A stretch of 64,000 bases of DNA from Pavona decussata. Lineage: Eukaryota. The DNA lies in contig CDRNST010000275.1 in the NCBI GenBank assembly GCA_977016875.1, forward strand, positions 372,001 through 436,000, in the 5' to 3' direction. Below, one piece after another: positions 9,834 to 59,530 of the stretch. The first letter of the stretch is position 1; every line of letters starts with the position of its first letter. The notes beneath the pieces were generated by a model. The model saw nothing but the letters and a program-made list of their open reading frames with translations. It ran no database searches and had not been told where the DNA came from. Both the position numbers and the translations under genes were made by a program.

Positions 9834-11945
9834 ATGAAGTACGCCATTTTGCTTCTGCTGATATGCTGGTTTATCAACTCAGGGATGGCGGATCTCTGTC
9901 AGCCAGCATCTTACTCAGTGCAAGGACAGGTGCTAAAAAACCACACCATCGCAGCCGGCCCCGCAAAGCGCATAGAAACGTGTATCATGCAGTGCATGGA
10001 TCATCCTGGTTGCCATAGCAGCAACTTTTATCGCAAGGACAGAGTGTGTGAGCTGAATGACAAGACGCATGCGTATCACCCTGAAGATATGAGAGAAGAG
10101 CATTTGACGAGCTACATGGAGAATACTTTCAGGCAATTTACCTGCAGCAAAGCGGACTCCGACTGCCATCGTTGCGATGTGTAGGTATGTGTGATCACTA
10201 GGTAAATTCCCGGGGAGCCCACAGTACTACTTTATCTGAATAAACGCGTATGTTCTGAGAACGAGATGGGTATGATTGCCAAGGTCTTCTCATTTTTACA
10301 CTTAAACAACTGCAGTTTGTTTTTGAAATATGTATTTGAAGCATGCATTGCTAGTAAAACTGTTCACTTGTTTAACTGGAACGATTTTCTCTTGAGATCA
10401 ATCTTGTTTTTGTTTGTTACTTGTGAATCCGTGGAAGAAATTCCGAGCGCGTGATATGAGAATGTATAGCGTAGTGTTGTTTGTTTCTCGAAATTTTGCA
10501 CAAGAAGCAGCGTCAGTATTTATTATTTTTCCGATAGAATGCGTCATCCGCGCACTTGGAATGGAAAACAGCGACATACCAAACTCAGCCGTGACGGCTT
10601 CTTCGTCTTATTCAAATAGCCAACATGAGCCGTGGCGAGGTCGTCTCAATGATGTACCTAATAGCCGTGGTTGGGGTTACTGGGCGGCGGGAACCTCGAA
10701 TCAAAAAGAATGGCTGCAAATTGATCTTGGGAAAGAGAAGTTGCTGACAAAACTCGCCACACAGGGGAGGCCTTCCTCAGACCAGTGGGTGCGGTCATAC
10801 AAAATTCTGTTCAGTTCAGACGGAACAAGCTGGAAGGAATATAAGGAAAATGATACTGTGAAGGTAATTGTAGTGCAAGTATAAAAACGTTTGTACTATA
10901 TGAACAGAACCACAAACACATTTATAGTAATTTAAACGGATTAAATTTCATTGAAGTTAAACGAAACCAAACTTTATCCAACTCTTTTGAAGGCGATGGT
11001 TCGCGTGTCATTGGTAACCACTCAGTGTAAACGTGAAAATCAAAATTATTGGAAAATCGTTTAGTCCGAATTTCCTACGGAAAGATTTTGCAACATCGTT
11101 AGTAGCTGAGCAAAAACAATGTGTAGTTGTTTTTGGTGGCGAGTTGTTAAAACGTTCATCGACACTCACTGGCTGATGAAAATCGCCTCACAACGAGCCA
11201 ACCAAACAGTCGAGAAAAGCGCGGAAAATCGTTTCAGCACGCGGGACAGGTAGTATGGCTTTGGTGTTTTGCAAGTATCTCAAGGTTTTTTAGGTAATAA
11301 TAAGAAGGCGCAGTACGGCAAACAGACTCAAAGACCAAAGTGAATAAGACAAGTAATCGATTAAACAAGATACTACAGAATTCTCAGAAGCCAATAGCAA
11401 TGAAAGACTAGGTTGAAAAGAGAGTTAAAGTACAGTATTTGAACTCAGAACTTTAAGGTTAATGCAATCAAAGATCATGCGCGCCAATACTGTTCTTTTA
11501 GATAAAATATATGTATCTTTTTTTGTAGGGAGGCGACGTGGCAGTGGTTAGGGGCGCCGGACGTGTTATCTGGAGCGCCCAGGTTCAAGTCCCGCTCCAA
11601 GGCCACGCTTTGTATATAGCCAACTGATTTGCCTCCCACGCGATGGGATTTTTAACAAATGTTCTTTTCAGTCTGCATATTTATTTCACCGGGTTATGGT
11701 TTCCCCAATTAGCGCCGTGGCGACAAATTCTCAGTCGACACTTAAATAAAGTCATTTATTTTTTATTTATTTTTATTTTTACTTAGGTCTTTTCCGCAAA
11801 TTCAGACCGTGGAACAATCGTGTCACACATCTTAACGTCAAGGTTTATGGCCAGATATGTGCGCTTTTACGCCGTATCATGGTACAGCCACATATCCATG
11901 CGAGTTGAGCTGTATGGATGTTTCTCCAGGACCATGACTTCATGA
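9834..11945 (+). pseudogene. PAN-discoidin gene copy 1; frameshifted, predicted 116-aa secreted PAN-only product or pseudogene
   Basis: Exons 9834-10184, 10538-10863, 11787-11945. Relative to the other copies, a +3 insertion and a 22-nt deletion late in exon 1 give TAG (10182-10184) directly before the GT donor. A 1-nt insertion in exon 3 changes the C-terminus from GCSPGP* to GCFSRTMTS*. Confidence 0.85.
11528..11750 (+). mobile_element. tRNA-derived SINE in intron 2 (shared by all five copies: also ~18948, ~35043, ~45693 internally deleted, ~58395)
   Basis: Pol III box A-like TGGCAGTGGTTAGG and box B GGTTCAAGTCC, followed by a non-tRNA body and AT-rich tail, at the same intron position in each paralogue. 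Confidence 0.7.
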
Positions 11946-12545
11946 AACAAACTGTCTTCAATCTCATGTAATGAAAATGATGATTTGTAACTAACATTGT
12001 GCATGCACATTACAATAATTACATAAATATTAAGTGAGATCAGTAAAAAGAAAGTATACAACTAGGCAATATGAAGAACATCACAAGTTTTACTGATGTA
12101 GAAGGCAAATGACCATATGCAAAGGCAAACACGACGTGCGTACGTACATGAAAAGAAGAGCGACTACTACCAGAAAACCCTCTTTTGTGCCTTCGAAGAC
12201 CTTCTTGCAAAACTACGTAAAGTTATTGGGACAGGCCAACAAAACTACTTCAATCCGGCAACAAAGGACGTTCTGGAACGTTTTGTAGAGGTAGAAATCT
12301 GGATCATATGGCGTGATTGATCAACTATAAAAGTAACTTTTGTACTTGACGGAAGATTATCGCAATACTCCAGTGTAAATTTTATCACAGCCTTTGGAGG
12401 AAACAAGTCTACAGTGCTAACTATAAATATAGAAGCATGTTTGTCACACATAACTATAGAAGCAAGGGATTCACTACATTTTCTGAAGGACTGCAAAAAG
12501 ACCGGTGAGGTTGACATTGTTTTATTTACAACTACAAATTAATAA

Positions 12546-13956
12546 TGCACTAGTCAATTGAAACCCCCATCCCCCCGGACCCGGGACAGATAGGGGGATA
12601 ATAGGGGCATAACAGCACTTTTGATCAGAGATCTGTCCCCTGGGGGTGGTAGATAAGATGTGTTTTGCTTCTTTACAGTGTCCCCACCTCGGGGAATCAG
12701 GGAGATTTGACTGTGCTTGACTCAGGTACTGAAGTTCTTCGCGAAGTGAATCGACTGCACGTTGTCATTTTCGCGCCATCCATATTGGCTGATTATTGGC
12801 GAAATGCTTCGCAAAATTTGGTTTAAAGACAATTCAAAAGGAAGAAGAAAATTCATTCCAGCTCTATGCAAAACTCTGCCTACAAACCCATGGTGCAGCC
12901 ATGGGTACAAAACTGGCAGTCGCCTTTGCGGAGATTTTAAAACCGCTCATTTGGAAACGATATATAGACGACATATTTTCCCTCTGGACTTTAAGGAGAG
13001 GAGATAATGCAGTTCAGTGAGCAAGCAAACAAACACCACCCCACAATTAAATTTACGGCTGAAATTTCAGAAACGGAAACATTTCTGGATACAAACATTT
13101 ATAAAGGTGAAAGAGTTCAGAAGCAATTCAGTTCTTGATGTGCGTACGCACTTCAAACCTACTGAAACATTTCAATATACGCACTTCTCTTCGTGGCACC
13201 CACCAGGGGTAAAAAAAGGCTTCATCAAAGGCGAAGCACTGAGACTTCTCAGAACAAACTCTTCTAAAAACATATTTGAAGAGTAAATTCAAAATCCTAA
13301 ATCACGCCTACAGGAAAGAGGTTGTCCCGAGAACTTAAACTTAAAACAAATCCTCATGAAAGCCTGGCATTTAATAGAACAACAACCATGGATATGGCTC
13401 AAAGAAATCTACAAAGACCTTCCCCTCGTATGTTACACTGAGAGGGCGGTCAGTCAAAGATATACCAGTGAGAGCTAAATTACAAAAAAGGCTTAAACAC
13501 ACGCTAATCCTGGCTGCCCTATAGAGTGGTTCCATTTCGAATGCATGGGACTTGTGGATGCACCAAGTCGAAAGCGGCTTTACGCTGACTGTGCTGTTTA
13601 ACATTTTCAAAGCTACCACTACTCAGAAATGCTCTGTTGTAATGTGAAATTCACATTCTTGCAAAATTTAATAATCAACAGCAAGTTTTGTTAAGATGTA
13701 TTAAAAGAAAGCTATTGCCTTATTAAATAATATTTTGCTCCTGATTGATCCAGTGTGAACGGTTTCTTTTGTCTTGCTTTGTTTGGTTTGTGCTTTTTTT
13801 TAACCCCTTGCCAATTTATTCCCAGGGGGAGGGGAATTTGATCTCAAGATTTTCCCCAGGGGCTGGAGGTTTTGGTATGATTTGTTCAGGGCCCTTGTCA
13901 AATCCCCCTACCTGTCCCGGGTCCGAGGGGGTTGGGGGTTTCAATTGACTAGTGCA
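12546..13956. mobile_element. Non-autonomous TIR DNA element (unclassified) with nested Penelope-like fragment
   Basis: Terminal inverted repeat TGCACTAGTCAATTGAAACCCCCA ... TGGGGGTTTCAATTGACTAGTGCA, extending inward with CCCCCGGACCCGGGACAG / CTGTCCCGGGTCCGAGGGG. TSD not resolved. Confidence 0.75.
12860..13500 (+). mobile_element. Penelope-like element reverse-transcriptase fragment (decayed)
   Basis: Frameshifted pieces LQTHGAAMGTK, WKRYIDDIFSLW, HHPTIKFTAEIS, THFKPTETFQYTHFSSWHPPGVKKGFIKGEALRLLRTNSS, typical of the PLE RT/thumb region. Confidence 0.85.
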
Positions 13957-15136
13957 TAAAGCTTGTTAACAGTTACGTTGCTTTCTCACGGTACTTTGAC
14001 AGTTGCTGAACGTTTGTTTTTACTTTGTCTACAAAATCATTTGATGTACATTATGCCTTATCACTGAAATATAACATAAATGTGCGGTTGTCTTAATCAA
14101 CTGAATACTAAATCGGACCTGCATTTGTAGCTATTTTCTCTTGGAAGTTGATCGCCCTGTTTGTTTGTTTTATTTATTATTTTTTATTTTTTGCGTGTGG
14201 CGCCACAGTTCTCTTCAGAGCTTAAAAATCTCGAGATAAGAATGAACGAAGGGAGACGACAACATGCATATCGAGGATCTTCTTTTAAGTTTTAACGGTA
14301 AAATAATAGCGGAACGAAATAGCAATCTTGCGTCGTGTACACGTGTGTGGTACTGTAGATATCTGCTCGGCGCGGCGTTGAATTACATATTTCACAGCTT
14401 GAGCTACAATTCTCCGGTTTTCCACAGGTGGTAACATCATAATATTTTCGATCAAAAGGAATTGTAGCTTTGAGTACAAGACTGTTTTGATGCATCCAAG
14501 ATTTCGTAAAAGGTTTTCATTGGTAGATTTTACAATGTGCGGTTCTGTTCGAAATAGGGATGGTTGCTTCATGTTCGCTTCGTGAAAGGTCGAAATTCCA
14601 GAAAGTACACTTTACGTTTCCGTCTCTCGACAGGACACTTTTTTCGGGCCGCCTTAGCAATTTTTATACAACAAACTATAAAGAATGGGCTTTAAGACCA
14701 TACTAGTTTAAACTTCAAATTACATGTACCAGTGGGCTTTCGTTGCTGTTAAAATTAGCTAAAATTACCTTATCCGCTAAAGCGCTGCAACTAGAGTAAT
14801 TGTAACAGCCAAAAACAAGCAGTTTTCAACAGCTTTCTCAAAATAATTTAGTGATTCAGGGAGATCAAGAGATGTTTGTTATGAGTTCACCAAAGTATAT
14901 CGATAGATGTTATTACGTTGATCTGGAGAGCAAAAAGAAAATGCATTATTTTATTGTAGTTTCGACGCAGCCGGAAGCCCAAAATGGCGTTTTTCGAACT
15001 TTCTTAGATTTCGAAAAAACTAAAGCGCTTCAGGACCTTTGAATAGTATTTTCGAAAATAACTCACTACGGACTGAGGTTATTTGGGCAAAATATGAAGA
15101 AATTGAAACTTTCACGACTTATGCCGGATTCTCGAT

Positions 15137-15158
15137 AATTACAGACAGTGGCTCTTAA
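15137..15158. mobile_element. Orphan Sola3-like transposon terminus
   Basis: AATTACAGACAGTGGCTC|TTAA resembles the right end of the element at 51429-56815 (AATTACAGACGGCCACTC|TTAA). No partner end found in the window. Confidence 0.5.
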
Positions 15159-15690
15159 TAATTGATCAAAAATAAATTTTAATTTATGTTGTCACTCAAA
15201 TCAGATCAAAGCTGTTTTCTGATGTAAGTGTATGACTTTTTAGAATATTCGCAGCGTAGTCGCTTCAAACCGGAAGCAATTATTTTTGTCAATATGAAAC
15301 TAAAATATCCAATCCCCTGGCGAATTCGGCCATATTTTGAGATAACTTTAGACCAACCTGACTGCGAAGAGCAGAAGAGGTTGCTTCTTATTAATAATTG
15401 ATCAAAAATAAATTTTAATTTATGTTGTCTCTCAAATCACGGACAGAGCTGTTTTCTGATGTAAGTGAATAACTTTTTAGAATATTCGCAGCGTAGTCTC
15501 TTCAAACCGGAAGCACTTATTTTTGTCAATATTAAATTAAAATATCCAATCCCCTAGCAGATTCGGCAATATTTTAAGATAACTTTAGAACAACCTTACT
15601 GCGAAGAGCCTAAAGGGTTACTTCTTGCTATTAATAATTGATCAAAAATAGATTTTAATTTATTGTTGTCCCTCAAATTTCGGACAGATT
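15155..15690. repeat. ~235-bp tandem repeat upstream of gene copy 2
   Basis: Motif TTAATAATTGATCAAAAATA.ATTTTAATTT recurs at ~15155, ~15391, ~15632. The same family occurs at 29810-30510 and 63595-63890, with partial copies at ~38670, ~47540, ~48840. Confidence 0.85.
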
Positions 15691-16432
15691 GAATGGAACA
15701 ACTTGCTGATATTAACCATTCTTACGATCTATCGGAAGATAAGCATCGAAACTGCAAGAATACAGAGTTTTTTTTTTTATGTCTTCAACCTTCATGGTAA
15801 GAGATCCTTTTTTTTCTTTAGAGGAAAGAAACAATTCGAATAAGGACGGCTGTCGTAAGTGAAGACTTTTCTATTCTTTTGAACTTTTTAGTTTATTTCC
15901 AAAGTCGGTAAACATATCAGAGATGTTTATTTTTGGCATGGCGCTCTTTTCGCTCCACCCAAAGCGCGATTAATTTGCCGTTTATCTACAACCATTTATT
16001 ATTTAACTGCGACTTTCTTGAAACCGAAAAAGACAGCTGAGTAACGTGGAAAACTAAGACGACGGGAAAATCATTAAATGATAACGGGGCTATTTCTGCT
16101 TTTTCCCTTGCCGTAAAGTACCAAACGTGATGTTTATTCTTTCTAACATCTCTGTTTAAATAACGCACCCTTGGCAGCAAACTTTCATTCAAAACAGAAA
16201 ATCGCGCGATTTGGTGAACAGCAAAAGCAATTCAGGTATTCGTCAAGGTTTTCGGCACTTTGTCGTGAAACAAACATTGAATACTCTCATGGGTGTTTTA
16301 TCATGACATTTATTGGCAATTCGATGGAAATTTTTGACTGACAAGCGTTTAAGGTTTTTAAGACCGTGCCTAGCTGTCGGCTATATAGTCTCAGCGTAAA
16401 GGGCATCTTATATACAAGAGGAGCTGTTCTTT

Positions 16433-16685
16433 AGGCCCGTTTAAACGGTTTCAACATTCGGTTCAACATGCGTTCAACACTTTGTTGAACCAAATGTTAA
16501 GTGTGCTTGAACAGGTCGTCCATCATTGTTGAAGCTTCATTCAACATCCATACAACATTTTCTTTATTCTCAAAAATGTTGAATGGTGTTGAAGCCGTTT
16601 GAACACTCCTTTCAATATTTGTCCAACATTTGCCCAACATCCGATCAACTTTTGTTGAACGAATGTTGGTCGTTTAAACGGGCCT
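16433..16685. mobile_element. PIF/Harbinger-like MITE
   Basis: TIR AGGCCCGTTTAAACG...CGTTTAAACGGGCCT. Orthologous copy at 31233-31529 has a TTA TSD; partial copies at ~8985-9105 and ~49677-49845; empty site at ~46945. Confidence 0.75.
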
Positions 16686-17280
16686 TTAGGCTTTCAATTT
16701 AAAGCATCAGGAATTTAAATTATGAACGTTGCATGTATTTCGAGTTAAAATTTCAAGTTGGGAATGAGTCTCCTTACTCTCACTGATCCCTGAAGGCGCT
16801 GGTTGGAAACAATACCACTGAGCGCTGAAGCGGGTTCACTATTAGGGACTTAAAGGAACCGCGACGGCGACGCCAACGAAAACGTCGCTTGAAAATACAA
16901 GTTTGCGTTACTTGTCCTACTTTGCGATTATTCTAACTCCAGTTCAACTTTTACTGAGAAAGGCGTTCAAGTTGAGACAGAATGAAAAATTTGTGATATT
17001 TACTGGCGATCAAATTCGCCGCAATCGGCTTATATAATCGCCAGGTGTGTCGCCGGCTTTATGGAAGTAGCGTAGCGCGAGGTTAAATTATAAATGGTTA
17101 AAGCAAATTTTTCTTTCTAACGGAGAGAAAATAGTAAAAAAAAAAAATGCTGGAGGAGGAAAGGGGAAGAAAAAAGGCAAAGGAAAAAGCAAGAGCAATT
17201 TTCAAAAGTGAAAATATTGTGCATATTAATCTCCCTGTTGCCAAGAAGTTAACACAATCCTTGTTTCCCTTCCAGCCGGA

Positions 17281-19998
17281 ATGAAGTACGCCATTTTGCT
17301 TCTGCTGATATGCTGGTTTATCAACTCAGGGATGGCGGATCCCTGTAAGTCAGCGTCTAACTCAGTGCAAGGACAGGTGCTTAAAAACCACACCATCACG
17401 GCCGGCCCTGCAGAGTGCATAGAAGAGTGTATCATGCAGTGCATGGATCATACTGGTTGCCACAGCAGCAACTTTTATCGAAAGGACAGAGTGTGTGAGC
17501 TGAATGACAAGACGCATTCGTCTCACCCTGAAGATATGAGAGACGAGCATTTCACTAACTACATGGAAAATACTATCAGACCATTCACCTGCAGCAAAGA
17601 CTCCGATTGTGGAAGTAGTTTGCTTTGCCTGCCATCGTTGAGGTGTGGAGGTAAGTGTGATCACTAAATACTAAATTCCTGGGGAGCTGAGCCCACAGTT
17701 TGCTTTATAGTCAGCGCCCTTACTACTACTTTACATGAATAAACGCGTACGAACGAGATGGCTCTGATTGTCAAGGTCTTCTCAGTTTTAATTCTTAATC
17801 GAAGCATGCATTGCTAGTAAAATTGTTCACTTGTTTAACTTGAACGATTTTCTACTGAGATCAATCTCGTTTTTGTACGTTACTTGTGAATCTGTAGAAG
17901 AAACTCCGAACGCGTGATGAGAATGTAGCGTCAGTTTTTGTTGCTTTTCGGATAGAATGCATCATCCGCGCACTTGGAATGGAAAACAACGACATACCAG
18001 ACTCAGCCGTAACGGCTTCTTCGTCGGCGTCAGGTGTCCGGCATGGGTCTTGGCGAGGTCGTCTCAATAATGTACTAACTAGCAATAGTTGGGGTTGCTG
18101 GGCGGCGGGAACCAATAATCAAGGAGAATGGCTGCAAATTGATCTTGGGAAAGAGAAGTTGCTGACAAAACTCGCCACACAGGGGAGGCCTTCCCTTGAC
18201 CAGTGGGTGCGGTCATACAAAATTCTGTTCTGTTCAGACGGAGCAAGCTGGAAGGAATATAAGGAAAATGGCGCAGTGAAGGTAAATGTAGCGCAAGTAT
18301 AAAAAAGATTGTTCTATATGAAAAGGACCACAAACACATTTAAAGTAATTGAACGGATTAAATTTTACTGAAATCAAACAAAACCAAACTTTATCCAACT
18401 CTTTTGAAGGCTATGGTTGGCGTGTTATTGGTAACCACTGTAAACATGAAAATAAAAATTATTGAAAATCGTTTAAAACTATCAACTTGTTTAGTCCGAA
18501 TTTTCAATGGAAAGTTATGCAACATCGTTATCAGCTGAGCAAAACCACTGTGTAGTAGTATTTGGTGGAGAGTTGTTAAATGTTTACTGACACTCAGTGG
18601 CTGATGACAATGACCTCACAACGATCCAACCAAAACAGTCGAGAAACGCGCGGGAAATCGTTTCAACACACGAGCCAGGTAGTATGGCTTTGGTGTTTTG
18701 CAAGTGTCTCAAGGTTTTTTAGGCAATAATAAGTACAGCGCAGTTCAGCAAACGAGACTCAAAGACTCAAAGTGAATAACAAAAGTAATCAATTAAACAA
18801 GATACTACAGATTTCTCAGAAGCCAATAGCAATGAAAGACTAGGTTGAAAAGGAGTTAAAGTACAATATTTGAACTCAGAACTTTAAGGTTAATAAAATC
18901 GAAAATCATACTGTTATTTCAAATCATATTTATGTATCTCTTTTTGTAGGGAGGGGACGTGGTCAGTAGTTAGGGTCGCCGGACTTGTAATCTGGAGCCC
19001 CCAGGCTGAAGTCCAACTCCAAAGCCACGCTTTGTATATAGCCAACTGATTTCCTTCTCACCCGTTGGGATTTTTAACAAATGTCATTTTCAGTTTACAT
19101 ATTTTGTTTCACGGGTTTATAGTGTCCCCATGCAATTAGCGCCACAGCGCCAAATACTCAGTCGACACTTAAGGTGGCTCTATATAATTTCTTCAGTTTT
19201 CGCTGGTAGTGATATATATATTTTTCTTGATGTTCTGATTCTTTCAGCCCTGTGAAAATATCAGGTTTCAAACATAGTTTCGAGTACCTAAGTCCTTATG
19301 CTTTGCTAAACACACCGTTACAACTGGTAAATCCCGTTTCCATGGCAACGAGCGGATGATACATCTGTAGATTCCTCCACTCCTAGAAAGTTTCAAAACG
19401 GGTTTGACCGAATTTCGTTCGGTAAAATTTCGCTATTTTTTTTTGTAAAAAAGAGAGAAACTCCAAAGTATCTCCTCATAAAGTCAAAACAAATTCTGTA
19501 CATACGTTTGGCCAATTTCTGCAATTTTCGTTTTTACCATTTATTGCAGTTGTGCATATATGATTCTCCGGCCTTAAGATTTTTTGGAGTACAAATACAG
19601 GCTAAATTCTATCATTGAGCCAATTTTTAGAAAAATTCACCATGGAAAACACTTTAAAATAGGCTTTTTTTTCAGGCTAAAACTGGCCTTGTTTCGCGCG
19701 CCAGGATAATGAAAATTCATGTATCAGTTGGAAAACTGCACGCGCTCGCGCCATTTTAGTACCCAGTTGCCGCGCGCCAAAAAACTGTATAGAGTCACCT
19801 TAAATGAAAAAAATGTATTTATTTATGTTTAGTTTTACTTTTACTTAGGTCTTTTCCGGAAGTTCAGACCGTGGAACAATCGTTTCACACATCTTAACGT
19901 CAAGGTTTATGGCCAGATATGTGCGCTTTTACGTCGTATCATGGTACAACCACATATCCATGCGAGTTGAGCTGTACGGATGTTCTCCAGGACCATAA
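17281..19998 (+). CDS. Secreted PAN/Apple + Cys-rich + F5/8 type C (discoidin) domain protein, copy 2 (281 aa)
   Basis: Exons 17281-17650 (370 nt, phase 1), 17956-18281 (326 nt), 19849-19998 (150 nt, TAA), all GT-AG. Signal peptide MKYAILLLLICWFINSG; PAN motif ECIMQCMDHTGCHSSNF..VCELN; discoidin motifs ALGMEN..IPD..TASS, WLQIDLG, ATQGR, SYKI, ARYVRF, MRVELYGC. An acceptor 5 nt before the ATG implies an upstream non-coding exon. Confidence 0.92.
19173..19799. mobile_element. Kolobok-like non-autonomous DNA transposon in intron 2 of copy 2
   Basis: TTAA TSD (19169-19172, 19800-19803); TIR GGTGGCTCTATATA / TGTATAGAGTCACC (purine-purine start); empty TTAA site in the other paralogues (GTCGACACTTAAATAAAG). 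Confidence 0.8.
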
Positions 19999-21017
19999 CT
20001 TAATGAAACAAACTGTCTTCGATCTCATGTAACGAAAATGAGGATTTGTTACTAAAATTGTGCATGCACATGACAGTAATTACATTAATATTAAGTTTGA
20101 TCAGTAGAAAGAAATTATACAGCTAGGCAATATGTAGATCATCACAAGTTTTACTGATGTAGAAGGTAAATGACCACATGCAAAGGGAACACCAGGTGTG
20201 TACGTAGATAAAAAGAAGAACAACTACCAGAAAACCCTCTTTCATTCCTTCGAAGACCTTCTTGCAAAAGAACGAAAGTGTTAACACATATAGAGGGAAT
20301 GACCTCAGATTCATTTATTTTAACTGAAACATGTTGCGGTGAGTAATGAGACTGAATTAAGGTTCTACAATATTCCTGTGCGGAACGCGACCGAAGCCTT
20401 CTGCAGGTTAACGTTTTAATTTCTACCTTATAAGTAAGTTGCGCTGTTGAAGCACAGCTGAAAATAGCATGTTGCTGATTGGTCATTTGTAACAACCCCG
20501 TTTTCAGGGTCTCCTCTTCTCGCTCCCTGGGAAGTGAAGTTAGGTGACGGAGAATCCTGGACAAGAAGCCTAAGGCTTATGAGGTCCAGGATTCCTCCAG
20601 CTTACAACATAGCCATACAGTGTAGTGCAGTGGAAACGGACAAAGCTTACAGAAAAAGCTGAATACAACCGAATGTACTACATAATGATTATGGCACATT
20701 AGTCAGAAAATATTATAAATTAAAAAAGGTACAAGCGTAAATTAATACGAAACTACTGGCGAATGACGTGTGGTGGTTATAAATGTGATTTTCAAGTCCC
20801 CTTCTGTATAATTACAACAGAATTCAGTTCTTCGATCATTTTTAGACTATTGTACAAAAATACTGGAAGTTGAGTAAGGAAAAACTAAGTCACAGAGAAA
20901 TCTAATTCAGTTGTTAGTGTTATTTCAGTTACCGTTATCTTTCGTAGATCTCGTTCATGCTCATAACAGAGATACGTGGTTACAACTAAAGCAAATTCAC
21001 AATTCTGTGAGTTCTAA

Positions 21018-21373
21018 GGGCTGGCTTACACGCGCGATAAGCATAAACACAAGGTGATATAAACAGGCGCGGTGAATTAAACGTTTGGCGCCAAAAATTT
21101 AAAATTCAAGATGGCGGACGCCAAGGAGGTATTCAGCGACGAGACCAAGATGTTTTTACTTCTTCTTCTCTTGTGCTTAAGCTTGTGTTATCCCGGTTTA
21201 CACGGGCGACCTTACGACATAGTAGCAAGTACAAGAGAAAGGAAAGATTTACTTTTTTTGGCGCTTGCGTTTATGCTTTCGCTTATGCTTGCGTCGTCCC
21301 TGTTTACATGTTGGTTTCTTGGGCTTATGCTTGGGCTTATGGTTATGCTTAGGTCGTACATGTAAACCAGTCT
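21018..21373. mobile_element. Old Harbinger-like MITE downstream of gene copies (also ~36886-37232, ~60104-60455)
   Basis: TAA flanks; imperfect TIR GGGCTGGCTTACAC / TGTAAACCAGTCT; internal ATAAGC/GCTTAT repeats. Confidence 0.6.
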
Positions 21374-21924
21374 TAATTCTCGAGGCCGTCAAATGTCCCT
21401 GGGTAAACTAATCCCCGACCTCCACTTATGGTGGTAAGCAGTGAATGCTGCTGTCTTTGAATTAAACGATAAAATTAGCCGTTGCCTCATGGTACTATAC
21501 TAACTATCTACCTAGTCTAGGTCTAGCTTAAGCGTAATACAGGCCTCGACGGTTGCTAAATTTGGAGATAGAGTGGCCAAACAAATAGATTTATTCTTTG
21601 TATAGACACGAAAAATATATAAACTGACTTCATTTTTACGGGAGAGAGCGCTTGATAGCCTACCATACCCCGCAACACGAGCGGCAGTTAAAATTGGTTT
21701 TCGTACGTCATCAAATACCTCTACCAAAAACTAACACTTCATTGTCGACTAAATGAAGGTAATACCAATTTCGCACCATGCTAAACATTTTCTTGCCCCT
21801 CCAACGTAGACTTCTAATTAGTCGATTTGAATTTGAGACGCACAGACCGTATGGTAGGAGTCTAGTGACTGGAAAACGTGTTACTCTCAGATTCTGGATG
21901 GAATTGGAATTTGGAAATCTTGAT

Positions 21925-22295
21925 GATTGACTGACTGACTGACTGGCTCACTGGCTAACTGACTGACTTACTGACTGACTAACTACTGTCTGGCTGGGTG
22001 TCTTACTGACAGATAAGCGGACCTGTTGGATGACTGACTGACTGACTGACTTACTGATCATGACTGGCTGACTGGCTGGCTGGCCGGCCGACTGACTGGA
22101 CCGATTGTCTGACTGACTGATTGACTGACTGATTGACTGACTGACTGACTGACTGACTGACTGACTGACTGACTGACCGACTGACTAGCTGGCTGACTGA
22201 CTGACAGGCTGGCTGGATGGCCGGCTGACTGACTGACTGACTAATTGACTGACTGACTGGACTGATTGTCTCACTGACTGACTGACTGACTGGCT
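21925..22295. repeat. Imperfect (ACTG)n/(GCTG)n microsatellite
   Basis: Long GACT/GGCT tetranucleotide run; orthologous runs at ~37703-37878 and ~61060-61412. Confidence 0.95.
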
Positions 22296-22322
22296 GAAAG
22301 GTCTGAGAAGAAAAGCAATAAT

Positions 22323-49859: not shown

Positions 49860-50558
49860 CCAGGTGGGTACATTAAAAATTATTTGGAAATACAAATAAA
49901 ATTACACTGGTGGATTAAAAGCGGTCTGAAATTATTTACAATAAAAATGTTCCCGACGTTTCGGTCGCAATCACGGACCTTCTTCAGGGGAAGTGAAAGA
50001 AAAATTATCCAGAAGCACAGTTATAAACAAGACGCTGATTAAAATTCAGGATATGTGTCATTTTTTCTTGTTAGCGAGAGTCAAGTGTAAATACTCCTTG
50101 GGGAGTAACGCCCCGTCGGCTCGATTGAGTGGGTCTTTGGCGCAATTAATCTCCCAGGCCTCGAGAATCTTTCTTTGGTGCCAATTATTGCTAGTCCTGA
50201 GAATTGTGGCCTCATCCCACGCGATTTCGTGATTTGTTTTTATCACGTGGTCTGCAAGCGCTGATTTTTCGCCTTGTCGTCGTGAGACAACCTTTTGGTG
50301 TTCGCTTTTTCTTGTTATGAATTTTCTCTGCGTTTCGCCAACGTAACTCTTGCCGCAATTAGCACATGGAATGTCGTAAACGGGATCACGAGTATCTTCT
50401 TTATCCATTTGATACAACCTCCCTTGCAGAATCTGTACGGGGGTATAGCACAATTCCATACGTTAGCGGGACCTCTGAGCCAATTAAGAGAGTTCTGGAA
50501 AACCATGGCATCAAAGTGGCATTTAAACCCTATCAGACAATTAGCAAGATGTTTCCAA
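49860..50558 (-). mobile_element. Penelope-like element 3' part (GIY-YIG endonuclease) with inverted 5' segment
   Basis: Minus strand: VYDIPCANCGKSYVGETQRKFITRKSEH..SALADH..H..RKILEAWEI..LNR. Plus strand from ~50420: IPYVSGTSEPIKRVLENHGIKVAFKPYQTISKMFP, the linker that normally precedes the endonuclease. Confidence 0.9.
49950..49992 (-). ncRNA. Minimal type I hammerhead ribozyme
   Basis: Minus strand UUCCC-CUGAAGA-A-GGUC-CGUGAUUGC-GACC-GAAAC-GUC-GGGAA: CUGANGA and GAAA cores, 5-bp stem I, 4-bp stem II, GUC cleavage triplet; located just 3' of a PLE ORF. Confidence 0.85.
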
Positions 50559-50689
50559 NNNNNNNNNNNNNNNNNNNNNNNNNNNNNNNNNNNNNNNNNN
50601 NNNNNNNNNNNNNNNNNNNNNNNNNNNNNNNNNNNNNNNNNNNNNNNNNNNNNNNNNNNNNNNNNNNNNNNNNNNNNNNNNNNNNNNNN
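50559..50689. other. Assembly gap (131 N)
   Basis: Run of N. Confidence 1.
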
Positions 50690-51428
50690 GTTCAAGTTGA
50701 GACAGAATGGGAAATTTACTGTCATATATTCACGTTCTCCACAAAACCTTGAATTTGGTCTTTTCAAGTTGTTGTTTGGCTGTTTACGGCGAAGAAATGC
50801 ACAAAATTTATAACGCAAGTGCAAAGCCTTTGCTTTTCTCATTAAATCCTATTGTTTTGTGGCGTTCTCGTTGCCGTCGCCGTAATAGCTTCTTAAACTC
50901 CCTTGTTAGCCTCCAACTTCGTCGTTTTTTAAAAGGGTAAGATCACACTACAAGCCTAAGTGGGCCACGCGGCCGGAGCTTAGCCCGGTTTCTGTAGCAT
51001 GAAGCAACTAGACTGAGTATTGCTTTAGTTTTGTTTTCGGCAGAGTCTTGGATAAATATCTTTAAGGAGTAGCGTAGCGCGAGGTTAAATAATAAATGGC
51101 TGGAGCAAATTTTTCTTAATTGTTAACGGAGAGAAAATAGTAAATAGAGAGGGAAAGGAGAGCAAAAAATGAGAAGAAAAAAAGGGCAAAGAAAAGTAAA
51201 AGGTTTTTTCCTTTGTTTTCAAAAGTGGAAATGTCATGCATATTTTTATTCCGGGCAGTTCTGTATTAATCCTGCATTCGCCAAGAAGTTAACGCATCAG
51301 TTCCTTGTTTCCTTTCCAGCCGGAATGAAGTACGCCATTGTGCATCTGCTGATATGCTGGTTTCCCAGCTCAGCCGTGGCCGGTCTCTATAAGCCAGCAT
51401 CTTACTCAGTACAAGATCAGGTGCTTAA

Positions 51429-54400
51429 GAGTGGCCGTCTGTAATTTTCGACTAATGTGTTTTGGGTAAGAAAAAATAAAATTCCTCAAACTTTCTCAAA
51501 ACAAAGGACTAGGTAAGTGATTTACATTGATATAACTTTTGGGTGAATCAAATAAATATTTTAGCTGTAGGACGAATAATTTGGTTTTTCAGCTCTCTGA
51601 AGGCACTCAGGGATCATTTTACTACAGATCGTAAACATCTGGGTCTGGAAATAAAGCGTAACTAAAACTAAACGCCAAGTTGGAACTCGAAATCAGAAGA
51701 CATTTATGATTCATTCAGGACGGTTATTTCCAATTTTAATAAAAAGCTGAATATTTTATCGATTTTTTAACTTGTCTCTTTTGTGAGCCATTTCGGCAGT
51801 TACAAAAATCGGCTAAATTCAAATGAAAATATCGCCAATGGTACATTACTAGACTTCATAAAAGTACACCCCAGTTAAAGAGCAACGTCATTCCTTCAAA
51901 TATATGGAATAAAATTTTGGGGCCAGCGTACCTACGAAATTTGACAGTTGAAATTACAAAGTGCACTTTCGTAAACAAACACTAAATTTTCAAATAGCTC
52001 AACGACGACGAGTCAATGACATACGGAGGAAAACAATCTAAAATCCCCTCGTGTCATGAAATACCTGGAGTGAATAAAATATTTTGCTTCCTGTTATAGT
52101 TTTTGTGAATCAAAAACATATTTTCGATGAATCATTCGCGAATTTTGAAAGAAACAAGACAAGTTTTCAAAAAGTATCGTTTAATTGTCACACCACCTGT
52201 TCAAAAGATAAGCAAATTCCGAGCTTCAAAAACAATCTAAATCGATAAATTATTTGACTTCTATTCCATACGTGGGCCAAAGGCTATCTACAAGAAACGT
52301 ACCTTTACAGTGGAGTGTACTTTTGAGGCCAGATGGTGAGGATCTGTGAAACGCACGTAACTGAGTCTCGCAAAAATTTACGAACTTTCAACAAGTTGGA
52401 TTGCGTGACATAAGCACAGAAACTTGTCCGCCCACCTGTCCGTCCATCGATGATCAAGTAATTTCGCGTTCAGTTTGGCAACGTTTACTGAAGGGGTTGA
52501 GAGGTATTAAAGTTAGTCAAAAGTGAGCTTTTGTTTATTTTCTCGTGACAATCATTGGCCCCTATATAACGCAATTGCTACTTAATACAGGTCATGACGA
52601 CACGCGGTTACTCAACCTTCGTCGGTGGAACATGTAGTTTTAGTGCAGCAAATCCTGCAGTGGTGAGGAGTATAGCGCTAGAGAGTTGTTTCAAGGACAG
52701 AAAAGTACGTCTAAAATCACGCGACGTCCGCGATGCTTCCTTGTAAAATGAGGCGCAGTTAATGTTATATACTCGGATTACTCCTAGCTAGAGCAGGTAA
52801 TCAACTGAACCAGAGTAGTAATGCAATAATAACAAATTTATAGTTTGAAGTTACACTATTCCTATCCTTAATTAAGAAAACGTTTACAAATCTGCTTGAT
52901 AAAAAGGACAATTCCAACATAATACCTGGTCAAGATTAAAACTAGCCCGCTATTTGAGTTGCGCTATGTTACTTCTCACGTAGAACTCCCATCCCCTCCG
53001 GGGGAGGGGTAAAGGGTAAGGTGGGGGATGAGGAGGGTCTGTGGTTTCATCGTCTTAGGTGTGGAAAAGTTCAACCAGGCGAGCAGGAGAAGTGAACACA
53101 AACTTCTGGAGAGGAATCGAAAAAACAACCAAAGTAGGAACTTTTTGGTCCCATGCGTTCTCCGTGCATTCCCTCGCAAGCCTTCCCCGGTCTCGGAAAG
53201 GACACGACTGCTACGTAGGCAACGAATTTCAGGGTAAAATGATTTATGTTTAATGGGTACTTTTATATTGTAAGGGTAATGCCGTAAAGATTCATTTTTC
53301 TGATTTTTAAACTACTATGACGTCAATAAATTCCAAAATGATGGGGCGCGCGGAAAGTTTAAAAGCAAAAGTCGTTTCCCTTCCAAGGGAGTAGGAGAAA
53401 TGAACGAAAAATTTCTGGAGACTGAAGGGGAAAAACAACCGAGGTAGGCACTTTTTGGTCCCCTAAGCACTCCATACATTAACTCGCTACCCTCCCCCGC
53501 GAGCCTTCCCCGCTCGTTCATCAACTTTGTTGACGGATATCTCTTTTAGCAGCTGTGCAATATCCGAGGTTAAGGAAAGCTCCACTAAGTAGAATTAGAG
53601 AAGAACAACGATTCCCACGATGAAGACGATCAACCAACAAAGCTCTTCACTTGCCCGGTTGACGGATGTGTAAAACTTTTTCCAGCGTTACAGCTCTTTA
53701 GAGAACCATTTTCAGTACGGTAATATAAATGCGAAATTGTCCTCGAAAGGAAGAACTTATTTGACAAGGCCAGAATCGCCTAGAGAGACAAACTTCTCAG
53801 CTAGTGGCAAGATCCACGCTTCGAGGCCGTGCTGAAGAGTTTCAAACACAAGGCTGGGCACGATAAAGAAGCCTGAACGTTTCACTGAAACTGTAAGAAT
53901 GCTACCTCAGGGGCGTAGCCAGGATTTCTAGGGGGTGGGGGGGGGGGGGGGGGTCCCAAATTGGTTCCAACGAAAACGGTTGGTCTAAAATCCTTACATT
54001 ACGTACGTACAAGACTTTGGCGTTTACGCTACGCAAACAGAAGACGCCTTGGTTGCCCGTTGAGTGAACATGCTTATCACTTCCTTGATATTTATGTCTC
54101 GGTGGTAATTGATGTTCATCAACGCCAGCCCAGACTCTCGCTCGCTTGACATGGTCGACCTCAGGTATGTTTTTAACCTTCTTAGTGTACTGAATGAGCG
54201 CTCACATTCAGTTGACGTTATCGGCAACGTGCACAAAATGCACTCCTTTGACTTCTTGGATGGCGGGCCTGTTTCCTCTGCTTGTTCGACGCTTCCTCTT
54301 TCGCTGCTTTGTCGTCGTTTTGTCTCTTCGGTTCTGGGATTGGAATTTCATCAATATAATCGATGTTAGGGCCGGAAAAATGTCTTGACTCGAATTTCTT

Positions 54401-56815
54401 ACGCATTATCAGTAAATGTTTCGCTGTGCCTACCTTTTTGGTGAAAAGAATGCATCGATCTTTTGCAATCGGGACATTGTTACGAAAGCCACCAGCTCGC
54501 ACAACACCAATGGATCGTCTACTAATTTCGCGGGAATTTCTGCTGTGCACACACGCGCATCTTGTTACACGGGAATCGCAGCTCTGCTCATGTCTCCGAA
54601 AATGCAAGTGAAACGCAAGTAGGTACCACAATGACGTTCACTGTACTTTGTAAGCATAGAACAAAACGAAGAATTTCAGGAATCGAGAGTCCATTATACT
54701 CTTGCTGGGATAAAATCACTGTTAAAAATAGGAGAGGAGGGGTTTCGGAGCCCCTGGAACGCTCCCTTTGGCTACACCCCTGTACCTTGATGAAAAGTTT
54801 CCCATTGGCCAGGAAACCGGCCATAAGCTTCATGCAGCAGCCGTGGCATGTGACATAAGGTTTGCTAAGGACAAAGGCGGAAATAGAAGGTTTACAGTAG
54901 ATGATTTCCTCACACCTCAACAAGTCCAATCTTTATTTTTGCAGAGCGGCTGCTAAGCTAAAGAACAGCCAAGAAGACACCCCTGAAGAAGACATTATTG
55001 CCGCTGAGGGCGGGCGAAGCTGCTTATTTACTAACTCGCCAAACTATTCTTGACCAGTGTCTGTTATCCCATCCAGTCACTTTCGAATCATTTAACCTCT
55101 GTAACTTAAATGCGTCGAATGGATTCAAAGAGCTTAGCATCGTCATGCTCCACAAAATGTGTGAATCTTGACTTTGATTTAATAGATGTCACCCATTTCT
55201 CAACGGCACGTAAGGCACCTTACATCGAATTGCAAAGGTGTCTTGTGGATGAGTGCAGCTGTGCACTTTACCAAAAATTATTGCAAAATTTTTGCATAAG
55301 TCTTGTAACAAAACGGTATATAACAGTTAGCATTTGATGTATTTTCACGTCTTCCATGCCTTCGAGTTGTACTTTACTTCCTTTCGTGGATATTACGTAG
55401 AGAGATGTAGACTTGTTGGCGGAATGTAGGAACCGGAACTAGAATATCTCTTCTAGGCTGTCATTAGACAACAAAGGCGTTTCAGAATTTTTGTCATGAC
55501 TCAGACCCCCTTCTAAGAAACTTACTACATGTGCTACCAGTCTCCTGTAAAGAAAACAAGCAAGGCGGTGCTGCCAATAGAGTTAGTAAAATCCAGCTGA
55601 AGCCGGACTGCACCCAGACTGAAAATCGGCGATAAATTAACGCAGGTTAGGGGAAACATAGAATGTTCAGTTTCTGCAATGGGCGCTTGATTGCTTTCTT
55701 GTTTAGCTAAGTAGTCTGTATCCGATATCCTCTCATTTGATATCGCATCAAATGAAAAAACGTTTTCTCTAAAACTGATATCAGATAATCATTTGCGCGG
55801 CTCGGCACTCAGGTCTTCCCGACCCGAGTGATCTGGGGACGACAATGTGTATGTAACGCAATCTTTTTCGCCTTGATCAGGAGATCTCTCGCTGCTTCAT
55901 GCACCACAGAAAAGATACTTCTATTGTCGGAAAGGGAACATTAGCTTGACGACCTCAGTTGTTGTAAGGATCTCGAGAGTCGTTGGATCTTTCGAATACC
56001 GTAAAACATTCAGTTTTTCCGTGACGAACAGCGGGAGTTACAGTCAAAGAATGGTCAAATCGAGTCAAAGTTTGTCGAAGACTGTATAAACTTCACCACA
56101 AATTCCGCGAAAACATGTTTCCATTCCGCCATCCCACTGGGAAGGTAACTGAAAGCATTCCTTTTTCTCCAAGTCAGAGTATCTTAAGCACGTTAGTGGA
56201 TTTTGTAATGTTTTTCCTTCGTATTTCATTGACTCGTCGTTGTTGAGCTAATTAAAGATTGCGTTTGTTTACAAAAGTGCACTTTGTAATTTCAACTGTC
56301 AAATTTCGTAGGTACGTTGGCCCCAAAATTTTATTCCATATATTTGAAGGGAAGACGTTGCTCTTTAACTGGGGTGTACTTTTATGAAGTCTAGTAATGT
56401 ACCATTAGCGATATTTTCATTTGAATTTAGCCGATTTTTGTAACTGCCGAAATGGCTTACAAAAGAGACAAGTTAAAAAATTGATAAAATATTCAGCTTT
56501 TTATTAAAATTGGAAAATAACCGTCCTGAATTAATCATAAATGTCTTCTGATTTCGAGTTCCAACTTGGCGTTTAGTTTTAGTTACGTTTTATTTCCAGA
56601 CCCAGATGTTTACGATCTGTAGTGAAATGATCCCTGAGTGCCTTCCGAGAGCTGAAAAACCGAAATATTTGTCCTGCAGCTAAAATATTTATTTGATTGA
56701 CCTGAAAGTTACATGAATGTGAATTACTTATCTAGACCTTTCTTCTGAGAAAGTTTGAGGAATTTTATTTTTTCTCACCCAAAACACATTAGTTGAAAAT
56801 TACAGACGGCCACTC
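51429..56815 (+). mobile_element. Sola3-like DNA transposon (internally deleted/decayed), ~600-bp TIRs
   Basis: TTAA TSD (51425-51428, 56816-56819); GAG...CTC termini; TIRs ~51429-52035 and ~56210-56815. Relic coding pieces at ~52594-52800 and ~53620-54960 (LFTCPVDGCVK..LENH; YLDEKF.IGQETGHK..RRFTVDDFLTPQQVQS). TTAA plus GAG plus very long TIRs matches the Sola3 description. Confidence 0.85.
53908..54782 (-). mobile_element. Non-autonomous hAT element (5-bp TSD) nested in the Sola3-like element
   Basis: TIR CAGGGGCGTAGCC / GGCTACACCCCTG; TSD TACCT (53903-53907, 54783-54787); minus-strand hAT dimerisation-domain relic TLPITSTECERSFSTLRRLKTYLRSTMSSER. Confidence 0.88.
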
Positions 56816-59530
56816 TTAAAAATCACACCATCATGGCTGGCCCCGCAGAGCGAATAGTAGAGTGTGTTATGCAGTGCATAGATCATCCTGGTTGCCATAG
56901 CAGCAACTTTTATCACAAGGACAGAGTGTGTGAGCTGAATGACAAGACACATGCGTCTCACCCTGAAGATATGAGAGAAGAGTATTTCACTATCTACATG
57001 GAAAACACTTTCAGACCATTCACCTGCTGTAAAGACTCCGACTGTGGCAGTAATTTGCTTTGCATGCCATCGATGAGTTGTGAAGGTAGGTGCAATCTTC
57101 AAATACCCGCATTCCTGGGGAGCTGAGCCCACAGTTTGCTTTAGAACAAACGCGTTTATACTGAAAGAATTGCAGCTTGTTTTTTAATATGCCTTTGAAG
57201 CATGCGTTGCTAGTAAAATTGTTCACTTGTTTAACTTGAACGATTCTGTCCTGAGATCAATCTCGTTTTTGTACGTTACTTGTGAATCTGTAGAAGGAAC
57301 TCCGAGCGTGTGACATGAGAATGTAGTGCAATTTGTTTCTCGGAATTTTGCACAACAAACAGCGTCCATTTGTTATTTTTTCGATAGAATGCGTCGTCCG
57401 CGCACTTGGAATGGAAAACAATGACATACCAGACTCAGCTGTAACGGCTTCATCGTCTTGGTCAGATAGCCAGCATGAGCCGTGGCGAGGTCGTCTCAAT
57501 AATGTACCTAATGACGATGGCTGGGGTTGCTGGATTGCGGGAGCCTCGAATCAAGGAGAATGGCTGCAAATTGATCTTGGAAAGGAGAAGCTGCTGACAA
57601 AACTCGCCACACAGGGAAGGCCTTCCTTTGACCATTGGGTGCGGTCATACAAAATTCTGTTCAGTTTAGACGGAACTAACTGGAAGGAATATAAGGAAAA
57701 TGGTGTTGTGAAGGTAACTGTGGTGCAAATTTATAAAAACGCTTGTACTATATAAACAGGACCACAAACACATTTAAAATAATTAAACAACCAAATTTGA
57801 CTGAAGTCTACCAAAACCAAACTTTATCCGACTCTTTTGAACGCGATGGTTGGCGCGTTATTGGGAAACATTGTAAACGTGAAAAATCAAAACTACTAAA
57901 AATCGTTTAAAGAAATCGACTTGTTTAGTCAGAATTTCCAACGGAAAAAGTTTTGCAACATCGTTATCGGCTGAGCAAAACCACAATAAAGTTTTATCTG
58001 GTAGGAAGTTGTTAAACGCATGTTAGATGACTCTCAGTGGCTGATGACAATGACCTCAAAACGAACCAACTAAAACAGTCGAGGAGCGCGGGAAATCGTT
58101 TCAGCACGCGGGACAGGTAGTACGGCTTTGGTGTTTTGCAACTGTCTCTAGATTTTAAAGGCAATAATTAGAGAGCGCAGTACAGCAAACAAGACTCAAA
58201 GGCGTAAAGTGAATAACACAAGTATTTTCGTTTAACAAGATAGTACTTAATTCTCAGAAGGCAATAGCAACGGCAGACTAGTAAGAAAAGGGAATTAACG
58301 CACAAGATTGGAATTCAGAACTTTAAGGTTTATACAATCAAAGATAATGCGCTCATACTTTTATTTCAAATAAAATTTATGTATCTCTTTTTGTAGGGAG
58401 CCGACGTGAAAGAAGTTAGCGGCGCGGGACGTGTAATCTTGAGCCCCCAGGCTAAAGTCCAGCTCCAATTTAGAGCCAAGCTTTGTATATAGGCAACTGA
58501 TATGCCTCCCACCCGTTGGGATATTTAACAAATGTTTTTCTCAGTTTGCATATTTATTTTTTACCGCGTTATAGTGTCCCTAATTAAGGCCACAGCGCCA
58601 AATACACAAGCAAAACTTAAATAAAACTTCTTATATTTATATATAATATATATATTTATATTTTTACTCAGGTCTTTTCCGGAAATTCAGACCGTGGAAC
58701 AATCGTGTCACACTTCTTAACGTCAAGGTTTACGGCCAGATATGTGCGCTTTTACGTGGTATCGTGGTACAAGTACATATGCATGCGAGTTGAGCTGTAC
58801 GGATGCTCTCCAGGACCATAAGTTAATGTAAAAAACTATTTTCAATCTCAAGTAATGGAAATGAGGATTGTCATTAAAATTGTGCATGCGCATCAATAGT
58901 TAACATCAATATTATGGGAGATCAGTAAAAAGAAGTTAGACAGCAAGGTAATATGTTGAACAGCATAAGTTTTACTGATGTAGAAAGCAAATGACCATAT
59001 GCAAAGGGAACACGAGGTGCGTACGTACATAAAACGAAGAGCAACTATTACTAGGAAACCCTCTTCAATTTCATGCCTTCGAAGACCTTCTTTCAAAACG
59101 ACGTGAGTCTTAACACATACCGACAGAATGACTTCAGGATTTATTTATTTTAACTGAAACATGTTGCGGTGAGTAATGAGACTGAATTAAGGTTCTACAA
59201 TATTCCTGTGAACTACACGACCGAAGCCCTCTGCAGGTTAACGTCTATCTACCATATAGGTAAGTTGCGCTGTTGAAGCACAGCCGAAGCTGGCATGTTG
59301 CTGATTGGTCATTTCCAGCAAATTCTTTTCCAGCGTCTCTTCTCTTCTCGCTCCCTGGGAAGTGAAGAGGAAAGAGCCTGGGACCGAGGTTGCATCTCTA
59401 GAAGTGCTCTTCCCAGAATTAGCATATTTTGAAAATAGGAAGAGAGAAAATTTATTTGTTTTGTCGCACATTACAGATTTTATCAAGAACTGGATCATTA
59501 TACTGACTGCCAATCCAGGAATTTAACTCG

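Follow-up and report, generated by a model that had tools for sequence, protein, structure and literature searches.

Why should a single codon stand in a different state in each of five tandem gene copies when the bases around it hardly change? The question is raised by a 64,000-nucleotide (nt) stretch of the Pavona decussata genome (contig CDRNST010000275.1, positions 372,001 to 436,000; referred to as the window), which contains five copies (W1 to W5) of a gene predicted to encode a secreted protein with a PAN/Apple domain and one discoidin (F5/8-type-C) domain. An initial annotation had singled out one codon in exon 2, placed it at the tip of discoidin spike 3 and proposed a specificity switch under strong diversifying selection or micro-scale gene conversion. 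The analysis favors, on balance, an explanation in which selection has pushed the paralogues apart on the binding face, or at least let them diverge there, the spike-3 tip being one of about ten positions at which they differ.

The spike-3 codon and its place in the fold

The 38-nt pattern AGGCCTTCC-NNN-GACCA-N-TGGGTGCGGTCATACAAAAT is present five times in the window, always on the + strand and with 0 mismatches (match starts 10768, 18186, 34286, 44935 and 57618 of the whole window), and 0 matches were obtained in 100 shuffles as the chance expectation. The five codon states previously read from W1 to W5 (TCA, CTT, TAT, ATG and TTT; Table 1) are exact, and the statement that most pairs differ at 2-3 nt is true for 8 of the 10 pairs. 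The flank is nearly invariant, as claimed, since the sole change among its 35 bases is CAG to CAT (Gln to His) in the fifth copy. The offset of 239 within exon 2 is right when counted from 0; the codon is in frame with exon 2, which is 326 nt long in every window copy. Four of the five states are bulky hydrophobic or aromatic residues, and the lone exception, serine, sits in the disrupted copy W1. What did not hold is the singularity of the site. Alignment column 43, in spike 2, likewise shows five states in five copies, and the fastest codon of the domain is column 143 in the fourth loop, encoded by exon 3 (Table 1).

A wider sample was drawn from the 602-Mb assembly, in which more than 700 discoidin-exon candidates were found. 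Only 14 of these are close relatives; all lie on one contig within 167 kb, five of them in the window. The whole-genome search with the focal context gave 13 matches, in the array only (TTT in four, ATG in four, CTT in two, TAT in two and TCA in one), and the 14th copy, L001, has a four-codon patch with RFQHT replacing RPSMD. Read along the array, the encoded residues run H F L Y M M F S L Y M F F M. These six states are each monophyletic on the exon-2 tree, which takes 5 state changes and 9 nucleotide steps. The array contains a higher-order repeat of approximately 68 kb (L002-L006 versus W1-W5; C275:302000-469000), with very uneven divergence between repeat partners: L003 and W2 are near-identical, and L005 and W4 are about 7% apart. 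Each focal-codon state had a single origin and was then spread by segmental duplication. The focal residue of intact copies is Phe, Leu, Tyr or Met, with His in L001 and its remodelled loop. In exon 2 of L001 (C275:298700-305000) four adjacent spike-3 codons are replaced, at about 9 of 12 nt, within ordinary surroundings; the patch looks like a multi-nucleotide change of obscure origin and recurs in a database protein (P0052).

The HMMER alignment sets TQG-R-P-S-x-D-Q-W-V of the copies on TQG-C-K-S-L-S-S-E-M-Y-V of the factor V (FV) C2 domain. The focal residue falls on Leu79 and the invariant preceding serine on Ser78, in agreement with the annotated location at the spike-3 tip. In FV C2 the spike tips are W26/W27, R43 and L79/S80, and S78 lies in the lipid-head-group pocket (PMC11098723). 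The equivalent of Ser78 is kept and hydrophobic tips are present; basic residues of the Lys23 type, belonging to the phosphatidylserine pocket, are not evident in the FV alignment. The structural comparison relied on an AlphaFold model of P0086, a homologue from Acropora millepora (61% identical), computed with an alignment of 36 full-length rows. In this protein (loop PSYDQ) the equivalent residue, Tyr188, lies in the middle of a 7-residue loop (184-190) between two strands. The model superposes on the C2 domains of lactadherin, factor VIII (FVIII) and FV with template-modelling (TM) scores of 0.84-0.90 and a root-mean-square deviation of about 2 Å; with neuropilin b1, DDR2 and CASPR2 included the scores are 0.79-0.90. 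The hot codon of exon 3 aligns with FVIII His2315, within the Trp2313-His2315 segment that the title of PDB entry 3hnb names as membrane-binding. By these loop alignments (FV Leu79, FVIII His2315, P0086 model) the variable positions map to the four loops of the canonical binding face, which in the C2 domains of FV, FVIII and lactadherin contacts ligand or membrane. The predicted position of the focal residue in the fold is shown by the same sequence comparisons.

The same PAN plus discoidin architecture is found in proteins of 262-288 amino acids (aa) from Acropora, Montipora and Porites, annotated as 'lactadherin-like' or 'retinoschisin-like', and relatives in sea anemones share 37-39% identity. 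The best named matches are from Acroporidae and Poritidae (55-67% identity), the window copies reaching at most about 67% to any of them. The window exons are 57-68% identical to full-length coral models, and the residues at the exon junctions match. Among 36 annotated homologues from three other genera the focal column has the second-highest entropy of 152 columns and shows 11 residue types; its neighbor ranks 1st and the fourth-loop column 5th. In 74 exon-level homologues the PS-x-DQ motif occurs with S, F, M, A, Y, L, W, V and T, and in many members the loops are longer. Two sister assemblies from the European Nucleotide Archive contain the orthologous array, with introns 96-99% identical, and their orthologues of W3, W4, L006 and L008 retain Tyr, Met, Met and Phe. 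They also hold extra copies without a one-to-one partner (PFFDQ, GSPSFDQ) in a different copy order, so gene content, copy number and order vary between assemblies. 'Lactadherin' was listed among the gene families diversified in corals (PMC6208414). Literature searches on a coral PAN-discoidin family or on positive selection in discoidin domains yielded generic mentions only, and the site-level pattern, the array structure and the function were not found described there.

Rates of change and competing explanations

Among the five window copies the two neutral yardsticks are concordant, with an intron-2 divergence of p = 0.142 and a proportion of synonymous differences (pS) of 0.136 in the scaffold. 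The corresponding non-synonymous proportion (pN) is 0.05 in the scaffold (pN/pS about 0.37) and 0.285 in the loops, about twice either yardstick. The beta-sandwich scaffold is under purifying selection and amino-acid changes are concentrated in the four loops; in sliding windows along the exon the synonymous rate stays level and the non-synonymous rate peaks four times, at spikes 1, 2 and 3 and the fourth loop, the other three loops being as hot as spike 3. Only the first 600 nt of intron 2 served as baseline, and L004 and L006 were left out of the intron trees. Non-homologous insertions spoiled the fixed-window alignments of intron 1, of the 3' portion of intron 2 and of the downstream flank, which were rejected as baselines.

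On the intron tree, parsimony assigns 11 steps to the focal codon versus 2.9 expected under neutrality, which ties it for first place with a codon of spike 2, and the split into synonymous and non-synonymous changes gives a rate ratio (omega) of 3.1. A one-rate site likelihood test on the exon tree gave beta = 5.3 (likelihood-ratio statistic 12.95, p = 3.2e-4, Bonferroni 0.05), rank 3 of 154 codons; only column 143, in the fourth loop (beta 8.1), and column 54, in spike 2 (beta 6.4), are faster. The initial annotation had proposed comparison with neighboring synonymous sites, and the focal site is clearly faster than these. Multi-nucleotide codon changes are concentrated in the 34 loop codons (27 of 38). 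The synonymous sites of the flank showed no unusual conservation of the kind expected from homogenization or from an RNA or splicing constraint (3.0 changes versus 6.9 expected, p = 0.08, no outlier window).

Several observations weigh against diversification of the binding face as the explanation. When each codon change is counted as one event, the focal codon has 5 versus 2.2 expected (2.2-fold, p = 0.08), and the loops as a class change at 1.23-1.36 times the neutral rate (p = 0.035-0.006), with the scaffold at 0.37. Significance at the focal codon depends on how multi-nucleotide changes are counted; of the proposed strong diversifying selection, the excess by nucleotide steps stands, and 'strong' at this codon is not established. 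The site tests use a single tree, and the recombination detected here undermines them: the pairwise homoplasy index (PHI) test gave p = 0.02 within exon 2 and p ≤ 0.001 with exon 3 or intron 2 added. The loop boundaries were set partly after the variation had been seen, the focal codon differs in only one of five orthologue pairs about 1-3% apart, and two of the five window states (in W1 and W5) belong to copies holding disrupted exons. The structural model is of a homologue, not of a window protein, and its mean predicted local distance difference test (pLDDT) score of 63 (62-93 in the discoidin part) makes it usable for the discoidin part only; a first model (P0061, mostly exon-only rows) reached a pLDDT of 49 and was discarded. 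A near-neutral, unconstrained loop, although rather unlikely overall, is compatible with the event counts. Under such relaxed constraint the loop tip would tolerate nearly any large side chain and drift close to the neutral rate inside a strongly constrained scaffold, and the contrast with the flanks would come from purifying selection on the flanks, not from positive selection on the codon. The hydrophobic or aromatic residues of the intact copies, with serine only in the pseudogene, agree with this account, as does the flank, whose synonymous changes are not significantly depleted, so that an 'invariant context' is unremarkable. It sits less well with an omega of 3-5 at the site by nucleotide steps, with the excess of loop pN over intron divergence and scaffold pS, with the share of multi-nucleotide changes in the loops, and with the high variability of the same position in three other genera, where it is one of the top two.

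Micro-scale gene conversion as the main cause, with tiny cassettes shuffled between paralogues, homogenized flanks and codon differences that are old variants, is distinctly improbable. In its favor is the sister orthologue of L007 (present twice, 97.3-97.8% identical over 2 kb), which reads TAT...CGG where L007 and its paralogue L002 read TTT...CTT. The three differences lie within 17 nt and are all as in W3, and the putative tract would span 17-75 nt, with an upper bound of about 75 nt; a short conversion tract across the focal codon may be suspected here, and the comparison is suggestive. The clustering is not significant after a scan over 2 kb, and TT to GG may be a single event. Exchange is further indicated by the significant PHI test, by an exon 3 codon that switches repeatedly on the tree between TCA and CAG, a 3-nt difference, by the conflicting placement of W4 and its twin L005 on the intron and exon trees, and by a spike 1-2 cassette in W4 with a pS of 0.47-0.61 versus 0.09-0.20 in its scaffold. 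Against conversion as the source of the focal states, each state is monophyletic on the exon-2 tree and no transfer is required among the 14 copies, no donor of the codon with its context was found outside the array in the whole-genome search, and scaffold pS equals intron divergence, so that the flanks are not specially homogenized. Of the proposed gene conversion there remains the suggestive signal of one orthologue pair and a positive PHI test. A related conjecture, about as doubtful, is a cassette-shuffling array in which the copies with a broken exon 1 (W1, W5, L002 and L004) act as reservoirs of loop variants for expressed copies via short-tract conversion; if true, it would allow germ-line, and conceivably somatic, renewal of the panel of discoidin binding sites faster than by point mutation. 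Least probable by far is decay or artefact, that is, variation from drifting pseudogenes or from misassembly of a repetitive array. Disrupted first exons in 4 of the 14 copies, the near-identical twins L003/W2 and L004/W3 and the gap in the window speak for it; the copies with Leu, Tyr and Met are nevertheless intact 281-aa genes, the scaffold retains its low pN/pS, the sister assemblies reproduce Tyr, Met, Met and Phe, and states are common to twins 68 kb apart.

Diversification of the binding face, the explanation preferred here, would make the array a tandem family of secreted PAN-discoidin proteins that evolves by birth and death in the genome of a stony-coral-like anthozoan. The binding face would diversify at about ten codons in four loops, with the spike-3 tip among the three fastest, and the array would, as judged from its sequence, provide a set of binding specificities related to one another. 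The tip of spike 3 would be one of roughly ten putative specificity- or affinity-determining positions. New states may arise mainly from point substitutions, several requiring two nucleotide changes, and recombination together with short-tract conversion may occasionally transfer states between copies. By analogy, the large hydrophobic or aromatic tip of intact copies may mirror the inserting or contact residues Leu79 of FV and Leu2251/2252 of FVIII.

Gene structure and other features of the window

The gene unit consists of three exons and encodes 281 aa with a signal peptide, a PAN/Apple domain and one F5/8-type-C domain. Exon 1, as seen in W3, encodes the hydrophobic leader, the PAN/Apple domain and a short Cys-rich linker, and ends in phase 1 at G/GTAAGT; exon 2 and the terminal exon 3 (150 nt including the stop) together encode the discoidin domain. 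The spliced coding sequences of W2, W3 and W4 are in frame and 846 nt long. The signal peptide was called by eye from the hydrophobic N-terminus, and the Pfam searches were run exon by exon, with the exons kept apart. Exon 2 matches F5_F8_type_C (PF00754) with E = 3.7e-20 and 72.8 bits (cut-off 28.2) over profile positions 2-83, and exon 3 matches it over positions 86-127 with E = 7.9e-6 and 26.4 bits, slightly below the cut-off when taken alone. Exon 1 matches PAN_1 (PF00024) with E = 1.4e-10 in W3 (41.3 bits, cut-off 21.4) and 2.9e-9 in W4. The cysteines expected to close the discoidin domain by a disulfide, at its start (E-C-V-I-R) and its end (ELYGC), are present in every copy.

Table 1. 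Positions of the focal codon, of two further variable codons, and of genes and other features in the window.
Feature	Position	Strand	Description
Focal codon, W1	10777..10779	+	TCA (Ser); W1 is a probable pseudogene
Focal codon, W2	18195..18197	+	CTT (Leu); gene intact
Focal codon, W3	34295..34297	+	TAT (Tyr); gene intact; sister-assembly orthologue also TAT
Focal codon, W4	44944..44946	+	ATG (Met); gene intact; sister-assembly orthologue also ATG
Focal codon, W5	57627..57629	+	TTT (Phe), then GAC CAT (Gln to His); exon 1 split by a transposon
Column 43 codon, spike 2	10666..10668; 18084; 34184; 44833; 57516	+	CGT, AAT, GGT, CAG and GAT in W1 to W5
Column 143 codon (exon 3 codon 34), fourth loop	35374..35376 (W3)	+	Fastest codon of the domain; aligns with FVIII His2315; W1 to W5: AGC 11886, AAC 19948, CAC 35374, AAA 45958, AAG 58771
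Gene W1	9834..11945	+	Exon 1 from 9834; exon 2 10538-10863; exon 3 11787-11945
Gene W2	17281..19998	+	Exons 17281-17650 (signal peptide and PAN), 17956-18281, 19849-19998; 281 aa
Gene W3	32258..35424	+	Exons 32258-32627, 34056-34381, 35275-35424; 281 aa
Gene W4	44040..46008	+	Exons 44040-44409, 44705-45030, 45859-46008; 281 aa; divergent spike 1-2 cassette
Gene W5	51326..58821	+	Exon 1 pieces 51326-51430 and 56815-57085; exon 2 57388-57713; exon 3 58672-58821
Insertion in W5 exon 1	51425..56819		5.4 kb; flanked by a CTTAA/TTAA duplication; no long open reading frame
Assembly gap (N)	50559-50689		Single N run of the window, in the W4-W5 spacer

W1 is a probable pseudogene. Its exon 1 is out of phase with exon 2 through a net 19-nt deletion and has a TAG at its 3' end (near 10160-10190, within the affected segment 10110-10200), a 1-nt insertion in exon 3 after the closing cysteine changes the C-terminus (11920-11945), and the spike-2 cysteine is lost (GWGYW); it is the sole copy with serine at the focal codon. 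In W5 the insertion has terminal inverted repeats of about 0.6 kb (51425-52033 and 56212-56819), 88-96% complementary, and looks like a non-autonomous foldback-type DNA element; exons 2 and 3 are still open despite the split exon 1. The same holds for exons 2 and 3 in all four of the copies with a broken exon 1. The frameshifts in L002 and L004 could be assembly errors, which is unlikely for the 19-nt deletion of W1 and the transposon of W5. In the spike 1-2 segment of W4 (44776-44913; also in exon 2 of L005, L009 and L001) synonymous divergence is 3-4 times as high as in the scaffold and intron of the same copy, which suggests an old cassette that recombination has retained or brought in.

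The assembly gap lies between the end of W4 and the start of W5, and the nearest focal codons are 5.6 kb and 6.9 kb away; N is absent from all exons and introns of the window copies. The flanks of the gap, 48831-49843 and 51264-51430, have collinear counterparts upstream of W3 (30405-31405 and 32201-32363) that preserve order and orientation. This collinearity would fit continuity of the sequence. Outside the array genes, positions 633-6923 (+) hold an uninterrupted open reading frame of 2,096 aa with matches to a Pao/BEL peptidase (A17), reverse transcriptase, DUF1759 and DUF5641. It resembles an intact polyprotein of a BEL/Pao long-terminal-repeat retrotransposon and explains the 48% GC content of the first 8 kb of the window. 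Elsewhere in the assembly, contig C250 (450000-830000) contains dozens of discoidin-exon matches that are nearly identical to one another, share 39-40% identity with the query and are spaced at approximately 1,094 and 1,234 nt; these are very regular tandem arrays or giant multi-discoidin genes.

Comparison with known systems

Corals are without adaptive immunity and tell symbionts, commensals and pathogens apart by means of germ-line receptors; among invertebrates, snail FREPs and amphioxus VCBPs are diversified recognition families. The array described here is a candidate family of this kind, composed of secreted discoidin paralogues that differ almost only on the predicted binding face. It also provides named positions for mutation, namely the spike-3 tip, about eight codons in spikes 1 and 2, and the fourth-loop codon.

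The closest architectural counterparts are the anthozoan PAN-discoidin proteins (Acropora, Montipora, Porites and anemones), which have the same architecture, length, exon-junction residues and four variable loops. The C2 domains of FV, FVIII and lactadherin (MFG-E8) have the same fold and loop layout, and the hydrophobic or aromatic tip may be likened to those of their lipid-inserting spikes. In contrast to these proteins, the window proteins have a single discoidin domain behind an N-terminal PAN/Apple domain, with a spike 3 two residues shorter, and form a multi-copy family diversified in the loops, whereas each of the others is a conserved single gene. Ligand specificity resides in the same discoidin loops in neuropilin b1 and in the engineered 'discobody' (PDB 4pt6), which the title of that entry presents as an FVIII discoidin domain engineered to bind an integrin with antibody-like affinity; however, those are single conserved or engineered domains and offer no natural panel of paralogues.

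In its mode of evolution the array resembles snail FREPs, amphioxus VCBPs and coral tachylectin-2. All are multi-copy secreted proteins with amino-acid diversity on the binding surface and signs of recombination and, in the present array only as a putative feature, of positive selection. Positive selection was reported for coral tachylectin-2 (PMC2880987). The fold differs and the diversity of the present array is seen between fixed paralogues. Many lectin and receptor families combine a conserved scaffold and hypervariable loops with birth-and-death turnover and conversion, and the value of the locus is a candidate family with its position map, not a new principle. Ten or so fast codons distributed over four loops are the usual pattern for a diversifying family of recognition proteins.

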